NCBI GenBank assembly: GCA_965644265.1
Contig: OZ286469.1
Coordinates: 64,666,001-64,730,000 of the forward strand
DNA from: Glycera tridactyla
Taxonomy: Eukaryota
Direction of reading: 5' to 3'
Length of the DNA: 64,000 nt
In this document: one piece after another, positions 16,973 to 35,518 of the stretch
Numbering within the stretch: the stretch's first letter is position 1
Layout of the letters: every line of letters starts with the position of its first letter
Position numbers and translations under genes: made by a program
Notes under the pieces: model-generated
What the model saw: only the letters and a program-made list of their open reading frames with translations
The model's database searches: none
What the model was told of the DNA's origin: nothing

Positions 16973-17320
16973 CTGACTGACTGAATAGCTNNNNNNNNNN
17001 NNNNNNNNNNNNNNNNNNNNNNNNNNNNNNNNNNNNNNNNNNNNNNNNNNNNNNNNNNNNNNNNNNNNNNNNNNNNNNNNNNNNNNNNNNNNNNNNNNNN
17101 NNNNNNNNNNNNNNNNNNNNNNNNNNNNNNNNGTGAATGGAATGACTGACTTGAGTAACTGACTGACTGAGTAACTGACTGACTGAGTAACTGACTGAGT
17201 GACTGAGTGACTAACTAACTGACTGACTGACTGACTGACTGACTGACTGACTGACTGACTGACTGAGTAACTGACTGACTGAGTAACTGACTGAGTGACT
17301 GACTAACTGACTGACTGACA
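16973..17320. repeat. (GACT)n with GAGTAACT variants, spanning an N-gap (16991-17132)
   Basis: Read directly. Confidence 0.9.
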
Positions 17321-25140: not shown

Positions 25141-25834
25141 AAATAAATTATCACCAGTTCATATCATTTCAGGCAACAACAGAATAACAACATATGTGAT
25201 ATTGTAATCAACCAGAGATTTGATTTCTGTTTCCGGTGTCCTACTTTGTGCCTCTGATAGGTACATTGGTAGACTTATCAACAGAACCTCACATTCCTGA
25301 GTACACATACAGAGAACAGTTGTATGCAATTTTCACTAAGAGAATTAGGAATTAATATCAGTAGAGTATAGAGGAATAATGAACTCGATAAGTCACTCCA
25401 TTTATTCACAATTCTCTCAAAATGATTTGTGGATGCACTGACTAGCCCCCACAGATGGAGCTTTAGTATTATGGGATAAAATTGGAAAATGGCAGTCCAT
25501 AGTGGCATCCATTGTCAAAAATAATGTAATCTCACAAGTTTCTCATCAGTAGGGTAGCACAAACCATCTATAGCGGGACATTACGACGAACCGCCAGGTC
25601 TCGTACTAAACAGGAGCCACTTCATTTAGTATAATTTTCGTGAGCTGATCTCCCATCAGTAAGCTGTATCCAGGCACCATCATATCGGCTGATCATGAAT
25701 GCTATTATCTATTCACAATCAATATCTAAAAGGATAACTCTTGAGGTGGTAATAATTTGAATTGGACCACTCTAATGATCAATATCTATTGAGGTACTTC
25801 GATGAGCATAACCCATGAGCTCATTTGCCGATTT

Positions 25835-28501
25835 TTATGCATGCACTGGAATATTTTTTCTCTTACGTGGAATTACTTTTCTTGTACGAATTCTTGTTCG
25901 TTTCACTCCATGATGATCATCCAAATCTCTCTTCCATGCAAAGTCCCATAATTTTTCTGAAACTTTCAAATTATCTTCGCGGTCAAAAAGGAATAAGTTA
26001 GGGGGTGCATCTACTGACAAAGTCTTCCATCCAACTTCTGAATGTGACACTTTTAACAATTTACCTATGATACCAGTAACATACATATCATCAATCCATA
26101 TTCTGCGAGTATGATGAGCTAGATCAAACATGCGCATTGCCAAGTCAAAGGATGTCATATAGGCTATACCTGCACAATATGTTGGGTACATATCAAACGG
26201 ATACTCTTCCCGACTCACATACCATTTACCTAACTTATTCAGATTATCTCTGATTGGCACAACGCGGGTCCACTTAGTAGAGCATAGAACAGTTTTGTCT
26301 GGTTTCTTCGATTCAATCTTTTTAACCAAAGTGTCCATTTTGAATGCATTGATGTACATGTCATCATCCATTTTCATGACATATTTTGCATTAGCACAGT
26401 ACTCTGATGCCCATTTCAAACCAAACAAAGTTTTCAGAGTCAGATTACGATAAGAATCAAGGAAATTACCCTGTACCATGTCACCATGCTTTTTGGCCTC
26501 TTTGAGCACTTTCTGCTGCAGTTCTGAATCATCACGTTGTCCCACAATGAAAACAACTTGAAATGCATCTGAATTATTTTGATTGGCTTGAGCCCATGTT
26601 TGTCGAATCAGATTTCTTCGTTCATGATGGGTTGGATCTGTGTTTATGTAGATCAACACCTGCAGGTCTTTGAATTTGTCACAGCGAGGCCCTTCATTGA
26701 TGGAGCATTCATAGTTGAAATGGTTCTCCTGGGCCCAGAATGTCTTGAATTCTTTGCCCCGGGACAGTCTGATGTAAGCATCTTTATTGAATTCTGCGAC
26801 ATGATTATCCCAAATATTCTCAAAAAACTTTTGGGTACGGCCTATATCTTCCCCATCATCATAAACAAAATAACCAGCTTTTGACCGACGTGACAGGTGT
26901 GTCAACTGTTTGGCTGGAACGGAAACATGCCTGATACGCATGAGATAAGGCAATACACCAGTTATAAAGAAATCCGCAGCTGGAAAAGTACGAGTCTTGT
27001 AAAGGCGGGCAAGTAGATTAGTTGCCACCTCTCTTGACATTACATAGGCAAACCCAGCACAATATGGTGGATGGCGATCAAATGGGTATTCAAAGCTATC
27101 AACACCCCATTCGTCAAGAACATCTTCTATACCTTGTTTTCCCTTGAAGAAATGCATGTCTGAGCAGAGCATGGACCTGGCTTCATTGTGGTTGTGAAGC
27201 ATTGACAACAGCTGTTGTAACTTCACACTGTTGAGGTAAACATTATCATCAACCTTCATCACATACTTTGTACTATTGCAGTTCTCTACTGCCCATTTCA
27301 AACCGAATATTTCATGTACTGTTGCCATATCAGGATTGTCCGGAAATGACCCCTGAACGATATCATCATAAACATCCCGTTCTTTCATGATATAATTTTG
27401 GATCCCTGTAGATTTGGCTTTACTGATCACAAAAACAAGCTTTATTGATAATGACTCTAAATGTCTTCTGGCGATACTACCCCAAGTATTTCGGATGATA
27501 TTACGCCGTTTATAGCTGGATGGCTTGGAATTAACATAGATAACACAGTCAATACTACCTGTACATTTTTGATTGGTTTTTACAATATAGTCATATGGGA
27601 ACTTGAAGGAACCCTCCCAGAAGTCCACCATGTTTGAGTATTTGTATGTGATTACGCGTGATTTTTTCAATGCAGAATGATCAAATTTGAGATTGCGATC
27701 ATTATAGGCTGCAGATGTTCGAAGTGCTGGTGGCAGCTCATTATGTGATGTGTTTTGCTCTGCATTCAAAGCATCCCCAACATCATCTACATCTAGTCTC
27801 ACATGGTCCGCATCTTCCTCCTCGCCATCCTCTGCTTCATCCTCATTCCCTTCTTCGGCTCTGTTATCAGGTGCATCCCAACGACTCATGTGAACTTCCT
27901 CATCATCCTCATCATCATTCCCTTGATCTGGCTCCAGCACATCACGTTTTTGTAAATTCAAAACTCGAGACACCACCTCATCTTTGTTTTCCTGAGGAGT
28001 TTGGCTCTCAGTGGTTGTTGTGGTTGTTGTGGTCGTTGTGGTTGTCGTGGTTGTTGTGGTGTCATCATTTGGCAAGATTTTGTTTGCTCCATTTTGTGAT
28101 CCATCATCATCTGAGATGGCTGCTGCAACATCTCTCACTTCGACTGGATGCACCAACTCCATATCCTCCAATATCTCCTCAATCTCACACTTTGTAGAAT
28201 TATCACAATCCACTTTATCACTTTCAAATTTTGTCACCACTAACGATCTATTTCTCTGATTGAATACATTGACTATCACATCATATTTGCGTTCATATCT
28301 GACCAGGCAGTTGTTTCCAAGCTGGCAGGTACCAACAAGAACACCGGTTATTATCACACATGTAGTTATTGCTAACGTGAAGAAGTAACAACGTAAACGT
28401 GACATATGCACCATACTTCCACAGCAGCTAACGCACATCACCTTCATTGTGTTTTCAGGATTAGTAAATGTCATGATGTCATCTTGATTTTGCGCCCCCA
28501 T
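25835..28501 (-). CDS. Tandem two-domain GT31 beta-1,3-galactosyltransferase/GlcNAc-transferase-like type II membrane glycosyltransferase (888 aa from the first ATG)
   Basis: Uninterrupted ORF. The track start at 28540 is TTG with an in-frame TAA three codons upstream; the first ATG is at 28501. It has an N-terminal TM (YFFTLAITTCVIITGVLVG), a Thr17 and acidic stem, then two Galactosyl_T-type domains, each with RRxxIRxTW, VF, D(I/M)VQGxF, FGLKWA, KYVMKxDDx, EYPFD-x2-PxYCAG and D-x2-(I/V)TG motifs. Confidence 0.93.
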   Translation of the reverse strand: MGAQNQDDIMTFTNPENTMKVMCVSCCGSMVHMSRLRCYFFTLAITTCVIITGVLVGTCQLGNNCLVRYERKYDVIVNVFNQRNRSLVVTKFESDKVDCDNSTKCEIEEILEDMELVHPVEVRDVAAAISDDDGSQNGANKILPNDDTTTTTTTTTTTTTTTTTESQTPQENKDEVVSRVLNLQKRDVLEPDQGNDDEDDEEVHMSRWDAPDNRAEEGNEDEAEDGEEEDADHVRLDVDDVGDALNAEQNTSHNELPPALRTSAAYNDRNLKFDHSALKKSRVITYKYSNMVDFWEGSFKFPYDYIVKTNQKCTGSIDCVIYVNSKPSSYKRRNIIRNTWGSIARRHLESLSIKLVFVISKAKSTGIQNYIMKERDVYDDIVQGSFPDNPDMATVHEIFGLKWAVENCNSTKYVMKVDDNVYLNSVKLQQLLSMLHNHNEARSMLCSDMHFFKGKQGIEDVLDEWGVDSFEYPFDRHPPYCAGFAYVMSREVATNLLARLYKTRTFPAADFFITGVLPYLMRIRHVSVPAKQLTHLSRRSKAGYFVYDDGEDIGRTQKFFENIWDNHVAEFNKDAYIRLSRGKEFKTFWAQENHFNYECSINEGPRCDKFKDLQVLIYINTDPTHHERRNLIRQTWAQANQNNSDAFQVVFIVGQRDDSELQQKVLKEAKKHGDMVQGNFLDSYRNLTLKTLFGLKWASEYCANAKYVMKMDDDMYINAFKMDTLVKKIESKKPDKTVLCSTKWTRVVPIRDNLNKLGKWYVSREEYPFDMYPTYCAGIAYMTSFDLAMRMFDLAHHTRRIWIDDMYVTGIIGKLLKVSHSEVGWKTLSVDAPPNLFLFDREDNLKVSEKLWDFAWKRDLDDHHGVKRTRIRTRKVIPRKRKNIPVHA

Positions 28502-28700
28502 TGATGTACTGTCTGTCGGACCACTTGATGTCTCATCCAATTTCGTTTAATCCGGCCTCTTTTGTTATCCTCCGATGAAACCTAATTGGCTCACCTCGAC
28601 TCTCTCTCCACCAGTCAATATGTATCTCACTTCAAAAAACCCTGCTTCTTGAGATGCACAATCGGTAAATTTGACAATCGGCAGAATTTCTTGATGCAAT

Positions 28701-32730: not shown

Positions 32731-34712
32731 GTAACCCAAGAAGCCCTCTCATCACAGGTCATGGTATCAACGCCTTAACCATCTTGCATCTAGGGATAAT
32801 GATTCAAATCATCACTATCAGAAGCCTCTATCAAATAGCAATTTTTAAATCCAATTCTGAAGTATACTGTGTTATCTCTTGACAGCCACAATAAAGGAAA
32901 AGAACTCAAAAATGCAAATTGACAATCGAATCACAAGTGGTTTTGCTGAAGTTTGGGTTGATTATAACAAGGGGAGGGGGTGGGGACAAATAAATTGCAA
33001 TAATCAGTCAAACACACTGAGTAAAATGCAGATTAACAACATTAATGGGGTGCTGAATAAAATTTATCACTTGAATGCTATCTAGACGGAGTGGTCCGTA
33101 ATTGTCTGTGTGGCCGACGATACATCAATGACGGATATACCGTTTAACGATTAGAGGTCTCGGGCGTAATCAGGCAGATGGATTCTGGGTAAGTGGGTGA
33201 GCCGCGCGAAGGACACTCATGGCTGGTGTTACAATGGCGCAAAGGATAATGGCAGTCGATGAAAGCCAGTTTGCTTTGTACAGCGTTAAATATCGGTACG
33301 CTTCTGGGCTGATCAGTGATGGACGATCGATACATGCTGATATTCTCAGAGACTCAACGGCCAGTGACAATACAACTCATTACCAATATCCCCGTTGAGC
33401 TATAATTTGGGACTATCTGGACACAGCCTAATTCTGATTTCATGTCATAAATCTCTCCCATGGAACTCATCTGGAAAGACTGCTCCTTTATGGCTTCTGC
33501 AATAACTCCTGTAATTCCATTGCCGAGTTTCCCCGGCCTCAAAAACTTGCCGAAATGGAGTTCCGAGTACTGCACTCAGAAAATTAAGTCCTTCTCTTCC
33601 ATACTGTTGGAGCAAGAGAGATTGATTCTGACTTCATCAATAACCAGACTAAGGAAGATCCATAAAATCAGGGGTGAATGAGTGAGGAAATTAGGTTACT
33701 GCAATCATTGCTGGTGAGAATGTTCCCCATTATCTAATTAATTCTGATAAAGAGTAAAACGCTGATCCAAAATAGGTAAATACTGTTGACTCTGACCTCT
33801 ATCTTACACAGACATATGTGATAAGAAAATACATGGTACCAAAGTCAAGCACAGCTATTTCATTTACTTTCCTACTGGAGATCATCATATCACGTGATCC
33901 TCCCAAATCCTCAGGTCAGTGAACTCTCAGCAGCGAATGTCACAGTAGCCATCAGCTGAAGAAGTGATACAGATGCATTCCAAAAGCTCCGGAAAACGCA
34001 AACTTTTCACTGTGAGTTCCATCATCTCTTCAGCAATGCGGGAGTTATATCAGAACACTGGCCACCTCCAGCAGTCGTTAGAAATTAACATGCTTCAACA
34101 CTCAGTGACCTATATACCCTGAGAGACTCATCAGAATATTTTTCATAGCTGTCATATGGGAGAGGATGGAAATATGTTTGCATCTTCATGAGCTAGTCCC
34201 CTATGGCATTCATGATATGATGCATTTTGTGACAAAAAATCTCTGGTCCCCCTAATGATGCATTCACATTCTAGCAGTGAGCAGATTTTGTATAATTCTA
34301 AGGAGAGCCAGATCCAAAGAAATGTCTGATTAATTCTTTAGTTATGACTTGGGCCAAAGCACAATAATGAGGATGTCTCCATACCACTTTGAAGCCTATA
34401 ATCAACCAACAGGTGGCGCTGATCCCAGCGTCCTCTCAGGGCCATCTACTGGCTGATGATAGGCTGTGGCATATCTACATTCCTTGTACATTTGCTCACA
34501 CACCTGTTAGTGTGAATCATATCAGGACATCAAAATCTGGGAGAAATTATCTACCTATGAAGACCCTATCACTTCATGGTAAGTATCCCAAACTGACGAA
34601 ATGGCTGTGAATATGGTGATGGAAAAATCTGCAATTCAATTCAATTGTCGATGGTGATGTCAATCATCGGGAGCATGTGGGGGAGAAGTGTGAAAAATGT
34701 ATGGATACTCAC

Positions 34713-34800
34713 GAGATTTGTCCAAAAGGTGCAAATGCATCTCTAAGTTGATGAGTTTCAATGTCTGGACTCAAATCTCCTACAAATATGTGAAAGTGTT
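34713..34800 (-). CDS. TIA1: TIA-1/TIAR RNA-binding protein, internal coding exon, RRM2 RNP2 half
   Basis: Translation [29 protein letters not shown](S), containing RNP2 IFVGDL. Acceptor TTCTTTCTTTTCTGTTGCAG (AG at 34802-34801), donor TC|GTGAGT (34712-34707). 88 nt; the terminal TC plus the first A of the 718 exon gives Ser in frame. Confidence 0.95.
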
Positions 34801-35368
34801 CTGCAACAGAAAAGAAAGAACGGAATCAGCAAACCTATAACCATGATGAAAAAACTGATATGTGATGGGAAAATGCACCTGAAATTTGATGTACGATACA
34901 AAAAATATGTGAAGCAAACTGCAACACATTGAACTTCATGGCTTTCTCTGAAGATAGAATTAGACAAATTTCAAATTTTTACGAAGGATGATGCCACTAG
35001 TTATGTTGTGTTCATTGGCTTGTGACAGTGATGACTGCAGAGGATAGTGTATTTAATGATCAGAAACACATTGCATACGTGTATCTTTTGGTTCGATAGA
35101 TAGACTAACCAACCACCAAACCAACCAACCAACCACTTGTCAACCATTAGCAGTTGATAATTCTCGATTCTGTTCATATATGGATGGTTAAGTCATTCCA
35201 ACTCAGTAGACACCAGATGCCTTAATGATGATTTTTTTTCATTCACAATGGAAATACACAAAGAGACTGGCACAGCAAAAACAATGGAATAATCAAATTA
35301 TTCTGCCTTGGATAAAAATAGCACCCACGTTCCCCCACACAGCAGTCTCACTAACCTAGCCATAGCAA

Positions 35369-35518
35369 NNNNNNNNNNNNNNNNNNNNNNNNNNNNNNNN
35401 NNNNNNNNNNNNNNNNNNNNNNNNNNNNNNNNNNNNNNNNNNNNNNNNNNNNNNNNNNNNNNNNNNNNNNNNNNNNNNNNNNNNNNNNNNNNNNNNNNNN
35501 NNNNNNNNNNNNNNNNNN
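35369..35518. other. Assembly gap (150 N)
   Basis: N run. Other gaps: 16991-17132, 45760-45891, 50876-51018, 53517-53721, 61444-61699. Confidence 1.

Follow-up and report, generated by a model that had tools for sequence, protein, structure and literature searches.

The DNA studied here, a 64,000-nucleotide stretch of the Glycera tridactyla genome (contig OZ286469.1, positions 64,666,001 to 64,730,000, called the window below), carries on its minus strand a gene of glycosyltransferase family 31 (GT31) that encodes two GT31 domains in one chain, the second canonical and the first degenerate. Its reading frame is uninterrupted at window positions 25835-28540, with 901 codons and zero stops, and the residue numbers of its protein are those of this open frame. 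The gene is intron-less and both domains lie within one exon, as an earlier note on this DNA had claimed; the search with the Pfam Galactosyl_T profile PF01762 that the note had proposed returned two matches, one in domain 1 (amino acids (aa) 344-540, E 1.1e-34, 120 bits) and one in domain 2 (aa 640-834, E 1.5e-50, 172 bits), the gathering score being 23. The parts of the gene are as follows.

25835..28501, minus strand: coding sequence of the two-domain GT31 protein; it starts at the first in-frame ATG (28501-28499), which is codon 14 of the open frame (the frame continues up to 28540), and ends with the stop codon (25837-25835)
28334..28390, minus strand: N-terminal hydrophobic signal-anchor (aa 51-69), the sole 19-residue window with a mean Kyte-Doolittle value >1.7 (2.19)
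27578..28333, minus strand: stem (aa 70-321), with a run of 17 Thr at 28060-28010 and 58 Asp or Glu in 252 residues
26897..27577, minus strand: domain 1 (aa 322-548), GT31 GT-A fold, probable pseudo-enzyme, with DDN at 27250-27242, a remodelled uracil loop DNPDMATVH at 27340-27314 and AAD at 26980-26972
26693..26896, minus strand: inter-domain linker (aa 549-616), with no stop and no hydrophobic anchor, predicted to be mainly helical (model residues 255-282 and 285-291)
26015..26692, minus strand: domain 2 (aa 617-842), canonical GT31 catalytic domain, with DSYRNLTLK at 26458-26432, DDD at 26368-26360 and IDD (the xED motif) at 26095-26087
25838..26014, minus strand: C-terminal tail (aa 843-901), with a basic end and the last ~20 residues predicted to be disordered

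A short N-terminal tail precedes the anchor, and a scan of the whole protein in 19-residue Kyte-Doolittle windows (>1.7) found no hydrophobic anchor between domains 1 and 2. The single anchor predicts the topology of a type II membrane protein, presumably located in the Golgi, and since no further anchor is present inside the chain, domain 2 could get into the secretory lumen only when joined to the rest of the fused chain. On the stem, Pfam gave low-complexity matches below threshold only; its composition, rich in Thr and acidic residues, suggests a mucin-like, O-glycosylated spacer. Opposite the stem, two plus-strand open reading frames (160 and 82 aa, window 27715-28259) are a low-complexity mirror of the Thr/acidic repeats, with poly-Val and His/Leu-rich stretches, and are not likely to be genes.

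In domain 2 the canonical GT31 motifs are complete, namely FLDSYRNLTLKT at 26464-26429, KMDDD at 26374-26360, YPTYCAG at 26188-26168 and WIDDMYVTG at 26098-26072. Domain 1 has PDMATVHE at 27334-27311, DDN at 27250-27242 and AADFFITG at 26980-26957, and FGLKWA, KYVMK, LCS and EYPFD occur once in each of the two domains; all motifs and coordinates listed in the earlier note were found where it had placed them. Aligned with each other over 251 residues, the domains are 31% identical (E 1e-48), a similarity far beyond chance. The Fringe profile PF02434 scored 29 bits on domain 2, versus 172 for PF01762.

Position by position, the third DxD residue, a metal-ligand Asp, is present in domain 2 (DDD, aa 725-727) and absent from domain 1 (DDN, aa 431-433). 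Motif I (Y-x-N-L-T-x-K) reads YRNLTLK in domain 2 and PDMATVH in domain 1, where four of the five conserved positions are altered. At the xED motif domain 2 has IDD and domain 1 has AAD, which the note had taken as a replacement of (E/D)DxxxTG; this is right for the first acidic residue, which is gone, but the catalytic-base Asp is retained as D523. Both domains have a C-terminal His (H538 and H833), assigned by equal spacing from the TG motif and not from a solved structure.

To place these differences against the family, all domains were aligned to a profile built from 82 single-domain relatives, and a column counted as conserved when 75% or more of 100 single-domain relatives agreed in it, which gave 43 columns. 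Of these, domain 2 retains 39, close to the single-domain mean of 39.8, and domain 1 retains 31, which is under the single-domain 5th percentile (34). Its 12 losses include Y403P, N405M, L406A and K409H in the Y-x-N-L-T-x-K loop, D433N at DxD position 3, G373S, and W520P, D522A and Y525F around the xED motif, as well as R472E and K477E, two charge reversals at nearly invariant basic residues. Among the 100 single-domain relatives the DxD motif is DDD in 94, DED in 4 and something else in 2, and none has Asn at position 3. The DDN of domain 1 is encoded by GAT GAT AAT. A one-base error is possible for that single site; as an account of the state of domain 1, a sequencing error was rejected, as 11 other conserved positions are altered too.

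Residues of domain 1 were mapped by alignment to B3GNT2 and interpreted with the structure paper of that enzyme, in which F217 and L220 form the uracil cradle, K223 makes a hydrogen bond to uracil O2, and D247 is the Mg2+/Mn2+ ligand (PMC7948508). Positions aligned with F217, L220, K223 and D247 are all altered in domain 1, and D523 aligns with the base D333. Still present in domain 1 are the structural Cys, Trp and Pro residues, D431, D432, the G-loop YCAG, D523 and H538. Judged from this alignment, the losses are concentrated at ligand-contact sites and not scattered, and domain 1 is a probable pseudo-glycosyltransferase module.

An AlphaFold2 model covering aa 312-901, built from an 80-row alignment, had a mean predicted local distance difference test (pLDDT) value of 84.9 and a predicted template modelling score (pTM) of 0.61, with both domains mostly above 85 pLDDT. 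The model of domain 2 superimposes on human B3GalT5 (8zwp) with Z 30.8 and a root-mean-square deviation (rmsd) of 2.1 A over 256 residues, and it matches B3GNT2 with Z ~29 and Manic Fringe with Z 18.3; that of domain 1 matches Drosophila C1GalT1 (7q4i) with Z 18.7 and rmsd 3.1 A over 210 residues. Among solved proteins, both domains come closest in sequence to B3GalT5 (domain 2 at E 3e-34, domain 1 at 2e-18). As modelled, domain 1 is a complete GT-A domain and not a fragment: degenerate at exactly its donor and metal positions, it has kept the fold. When the two domains were predicted as separate chains, the interface score ipSAE was 0.34 versus 0.00 for the best of three controls, at a partner pLDDT of at least 76, but the three runs shared 0% of their contacts, and in calibration a score of 0.60 or less was obtained for 5 of 78 solved complexes and for all 4 passing mismatches; passes in this band are more often wrong than right. 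This score is not counted as evidence for a pseudo-dimer.

How common such proteins are was examined in sequence databases and in the genome itself. A word-index protein search gave six matches with the whole protein, mostly merged gene models, and zero with domain 1 alone. In an exhaustive HMMER search of 1.84 billion representatives no orthologue turned up, and the highest identity, 43%, was to single-domain proteins; the same search gave dozens of proteins with two to seven GT31 domains. An internal hydrophobic anchor marks gene-model fusions (P0002, P0003, P0018, P0021, P0024 and P0052), most of the other multi-domain proteins have an N-terminal anchor only, and P0056 is one uninterrupted open reading frame on its contig. 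By number of domains, the named proteins, nearly all of them annotated as 'uncharacterized', come from the following animals.

Two GT31 domains: the crinoid Antedon; the urchins Diadema and Lytechinus; the sea cucumber Holothuria; the copepod Tigriopus; the mantis shrimp Oratosquilla; the sea spider Pycnogonum; the scallops Mizuhopecten and Argopecten
Three GT31 domains: the clam Mya
Four and seven GT31 domains: the hemichordate Ptychodera

A clean set of 23 two-domain proteins without an internal anchor, counting in the Glycera gene, was used to ask which domain is degenerate. Scored by the loss of DxD position 3 or of the catalytic base, it is the N-terminal one in 15 of the 23, or in 16 when a change at any of the three DxD positions is accepted, and the C-terminal one in a single protein, P0035. 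In the N-terminal domains of other tandem proteins the DxD motif has become DDN four times and DDH three times. DDN is also the state of domain 1 in two proteins from ENA, P0023 and P0056, whose alignment with the Glycera protein is collinear, at 26-27% identity. A quick 97-row tree groups the N-domains of echinoderms in one clade (Shimodaira-Hasegawa-like approximate likelihood-ratio support 98) and their C-domains in another (88), which indicates that the tandem architecture is old within echinoderms, and the pattern of a degenerate N-domain and an intact C-domain is kept across echinoderm classes. In several other proteins of that tree the two domains are sisters, as expected from independent duplications. 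The tandem GT31 layout is not rare, the family already has a described precedent for it, and the suggestion that the Glycera architecture is unusual has to be given up: multi-domain GT31 proteins number in the dozens, and B3GLCT has been published with an inactive N-terminal GT-A domain. Tandem GT31 proteins are thus widespread and their principle is described, but the Galactosyl_T-type tandem itself is not; no description of it was found in the open-access full texts searched, and a 2020 survey of animal GT31 proteins lists X/GALT and FRINGE/X architectures and no GALT-GALT tandem (PMC8022947).

Three groups among these proteins may be recorded separately. P0038, P0041, P0044, P0067 and their relatives form an echinoderm-wide two-domain family (crinoid, holothurian and echinoids) in which the C-domain is B3GNT-like (KGDDD) and the N-domain strongly degenerate; the copy from Holothuria bears the annotation lactosylceramide beta-1,3-GlcNAc-transferase, and the full protein is found on twelve Logan contigs of 2.5-3 kb. 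In Ptychodera flava, P0007 and P0008 (XP_070542326, XP_070547541), together with P0013 and P0014, have seven GT31 domains in 2100-2160 aa or four in 1245-1297 aa, behind one N-terminal anchor and with intact-DDD and degenerate domains interspersed, and all are annotated as uncharacterized. The P0011 cluster of Mya arenaria (e.g. XP_052819735), with three GT31 domains, has 12 members at 90% identity or more, located on at least three large contigs, and its domain 3 has DDN as well as DN at the xED motif.

Compared with known systems, the closest parallel is human B3GLCT, a CAZy GT31 enzyme solved in 2026, whose two GT-A domains include an N-domain with EEE at the DxD position and without the xED motif and the C-terminal His; this N-domain binds neither UDP nor Mn2+, is essential for acceptor docking, and was inferred by the authors to stem from duplication and fusion of the C-terminal domain (PMC13597200). 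The Glycera protein is likewise a CAZy GT31 member with two linker-joined GT-A domains per chain, the N-terminal one degenerate at DxD. Unlike B3GLCT, which has a Fringe-type catalytic domain, both Glycera domains are of Galactosyl_T type; domain 1 keeps the DD-, the base Asp and the C-terminal His that the B3GLCT N-domain lacks, and the chain has a membrane anchor and a Thr/acid stem of ~250 residues. The Glycera gene is a duplication independent of B3GLCT and not its orthologue.

Human B3GALT5, B3GNT2 and B3GALT6 are the best sequence and structure matches to domain 2 and share its motifs I-V, but they have one GT-A domain per chain and no second, degenerate one; B3GNT2 forms homodimers (PMC7948508). 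Cosmc (C1GALT1C1) and CHPF/CHPF2 are GT31 members without DxD, Cosmc also without xED, that serve as chaperone or scaffold for an active partner (PMC7185993; PMC8022947). Cosmc is a separate polypeptide of another GT31 subgroup, whereas the degenerate Glycera copy is fused in cis and has kept more catalytic residues: loss of both DxD and xED, the Cosmc-like state, is not found in domain 1, which has the DD- and the base Asp. CHPF differs from the GT31-GT31 arrangement here in that its GT31 domain is combined with one of family GT7. COLGALT1 (GT25) and LARGE1 (GT8 and GT49) are also tandem GT-A proteins, but of other CAZy families and with other inter-domain geometry, and in LARGE1 both GT-A domains are active. 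The marine-invertebrate tandems (Antedon XP_071947460, Diadema XP_072178071, Lytechinus XP_041458621, Holothuria KAJ8026047, Tigriopus TRY61115, P0023 and P0056) share with the Glycera protein the PF01762-PF01762 order, one N-terminal anchor, a degenerate N-domain and an intact C-domain; their identity to it is 23-30%, and the trees indicate several independent duplications. The echinoderm tandem family is B3GNT-like (KGDDD), and the Glycera protein is B3GALT-like.

With regard to the origin of the two domains, the top match of domain 1 in the 2.04-Gb genome is domain 2 (152 bits, next paralogue 128), and BLAST gave the same order (148 bits versus 121). Domain 2, for its part, scores higher with canonical paralogues (178 bits) than with domain 1, which is what faster divergence of domain 1 would produce; the branch of domain 1 measures 1.3-1.5 changes per column and that of domain 2 0.76-0.89. 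FGLKWA and EYPFD, present in both Glycera domains, occur in none of the 166 other GT31 proteins examined, and KYVMK in 3 of them. These private motifs favour internal duplication, or a later exchange between the domains. A more careful tree of 44 rows, from which the clades of echinoderms and hemichordates were left out, as were the long rows P0077_D1, P0046_D1 and own_L005, places domain 1, domain 2 and the single-domain paralogues L003 and L004 in one clade (support 88/86) and does not settle the order within it. Constraining the two domains to be sisters costs 0.26 log-likelihood units and is not rejected by the approximately unbiased (AU) test (p 0.49), so their sisterhood is compatible with the data and not proven. 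The internal duplication advanced earlier is plausible on account of the private motifs and the best match of domain 1, but the domain tree does not confirm it, and an older shared architecture is the other candidate origin. Both domains would have arisen by duplication within a small GT31 clade of this genome, most simply by an internal tandem duplication or fusion.

We favour, with moderate confidence, the reading that the locus is an intact gene for an active beta-1,3-transferase, domain 2, joined to a non-catalytic GT-A module for docking or stabilisation, domain 1. Domain 2 is read as active from its complete motif set and its structural match, and would carry out the catalysis as a metal-dependent, inverting beta-1,3-glycosyltransferase of the B3GALT/B3GNT type using a UDP-sugar. 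Domain 1 would be a paralogous copy that has kept the fold but no longer binds nucleotide and metal in the canonical way; the analogy with B3GLCT and the recurrent N-degenerate pattern suggest that it most likely docks or presents the acceptor or stabilises domain 2, without catalysis of its own. The long, O-glycosylatable stem would hold both domains off the Golgi membrane.

Several observations weigh against this reading. Domain 1 keeps the base Asp, two of the three DxD residues, the YCAG loop and the C-terminal His, and Asn can ligate metal through its carbonyl oxygen; for these reasons we infer, and do not observe, that domain 1 is inactive. The 1.84 billion representatives hold no orthologue that would reveal purifying selection on domain 1. 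The tree does not single out the two domains as sisters, and grouping domain 1 with the first domains of P0023 and P0056 instead costs 7.7 log-likelihood units and is not rejected either (p 0.225). Close packing of domains 1 and 2, which in enzymes of the B3GLCT type buries the N-domain against the C-domain in an acceptor cleft, is weakly suggested by the two-chain prediction (ipSAE 0.34, 0% of contacts shared between runs), and the full-length model has a pTM of 0.61. Finally, the GT31 gene is a gene predicted from sequence.

The residues kept in domain 1 also bear on the rather unlikely alternative that the enzyme is bifunctional, with both domains active and a non-canonical donor site in domain 1 (another nucleotide-sugar or another metal geometry), so that it adds two successive sugars or polymerises a repeat, in the manner of LARGE1 or the chondroitin synthases. 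D523, D431, D432, the YCAG G-loop and the C-terminal His would serve such an activity, the recurrence of Asn or His at DxD position 3 in other tandem N-domains (DDN four times, DDH three times) is in keeping with it, and GT27 enzymes have a functional metal site of the form DxH. However, all three uracil-contact positions and the two invariant basic residues (R472E, K477E) are replaced, none of the 100 single-domain relatives carries the states of domain 1, and in B3GLCT, the same-family precedent with a degenerate N-domain, that domain is inactive.

The long branch of domain 1 (1.3-1.5 changes per column versus 0.76-0.89 for domain 2) would also suit its being a functionless relic, a decaying duplicate acting as an inert spacer whose frame stays open only since a stop would remove domain 2, and among the 1.84 billion representatives there is no orthologue to show constraint on it. 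We nevertheless regard a relic as unlikely, because domain 1 still scores 120 bits on PF01762 and holds 31 of 43 conserved positions, the structural Cys, Trp and Pro residues among them, and is predicted with high confidence as a whole GT-A domain without truncation. Moreover, its losses cluster at ligand contacts, and the N-degenerate/C-intact pattern is kept across echinoderm classes.

If the docking or stabilising reading is correct, the Glycera gene is an independent, B3GALT-branch case of the B3GLCT design, in which a catalytic GT-A domain stands behind a fused inactive copy, and its value taken alone is modest. Because decay has gone less far in domain 1 than in the N-domain of B3GLCT, the base Asp and the C-terminal His being present, domain 1 is a possible intermediate on the way from a glycosyltransferase domain to a binding module. 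The recurrent pattern across tandem GT31 proteins suggests a general and biochemically testable rule, which is perhaps more useful than the single gene. A more speculative proposal, which we consider improbable, is that domain 1 has been repurposed, either as a lectin-like binder of glycans or mucins that makes domain 2 processive on dense O-glycans or as a second transferase with an altered donor, and that tandem arrays more broadly are an unrecognised class. With an altered-donor transferase, the single chain would be a synthase for a glycan of beta-1,3-linked repeats. The arrays of two to seven domains, with intact and degenerate domains alternating (annelid-like, echinoderm, hemichordate, mollusc and arthropod), would be repeatedly evolved modular glycan-assembly enzymes.

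The GT31 gene is nested, in sense orientation, within an intron of ~34 kb that splits the second RNA recognition motif (RRM2) of a TIA-1/TIAR homologue on the same strand. The exons bounding this intron are as follows.

34712..34825, minus strand: host exon with RNP2 of RRM2 of the TIA-1/TIAR homologue, the upstream boundary of the intron
595..744, minus strand: host exon with RNP1 of RRM2 of the TIA-1/TIAR homologue (KSKGYGFVSF), the downstream boundary of the same intron

An AATAAA lies ~430 nucleotides 3' of the GT31 stop, near 25405, and is a candidate poly(A) signal; together with the sense nesting it raises the question of how the TIA-1/TIAR host transcript reads through the GT31 gene. 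Location inside an intron of another gene would also suit an artefact or a dead gene, that is, a mis-assembly merging two single-domain neighbours or an unexpressed pseudogene. Such an account is highly improbable: chance cannot give an open frame of 2.7 kb in DNA of 40% GC, no N run lies inside 25835-28540 (the nearest are at 16991-17132 and 35369-35518), and the linker has neither a second anchor nor a second start context, whereas true merged database models (P0002, P0018, P0021, P0024) do have an internal anchor. The genome contains at least 56 GT31 loci, all but one with an uninterrupted frame across the match, which makes intron-less coding exons the rule for GT31 in this genome.

Among the GT31 loci detected, the gene at 25835-28540 is the only one with a two-domain frame. 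A 1392-aa open reading frame on C7 was considered as a second tandem gene and rejected, as it has one GT31 domain only. This frame of 1392 codons (L014:4684-8862, plus strand, about G000:C7:36622683-36626861) carries a single Galactosyl_T domain at aa 179-365, followed by ~1000 residues without a Pfam match, an unusually long C-terminal extension for GT31. Elsewhere in the genome, intron-less GT31 paralogues form clusters with a spacing of 12-25 kb at G000:C7:57650419-57724978 and G000:C47:21009479-21022924, the kind of tandem array that could yield fused two-domain genes.

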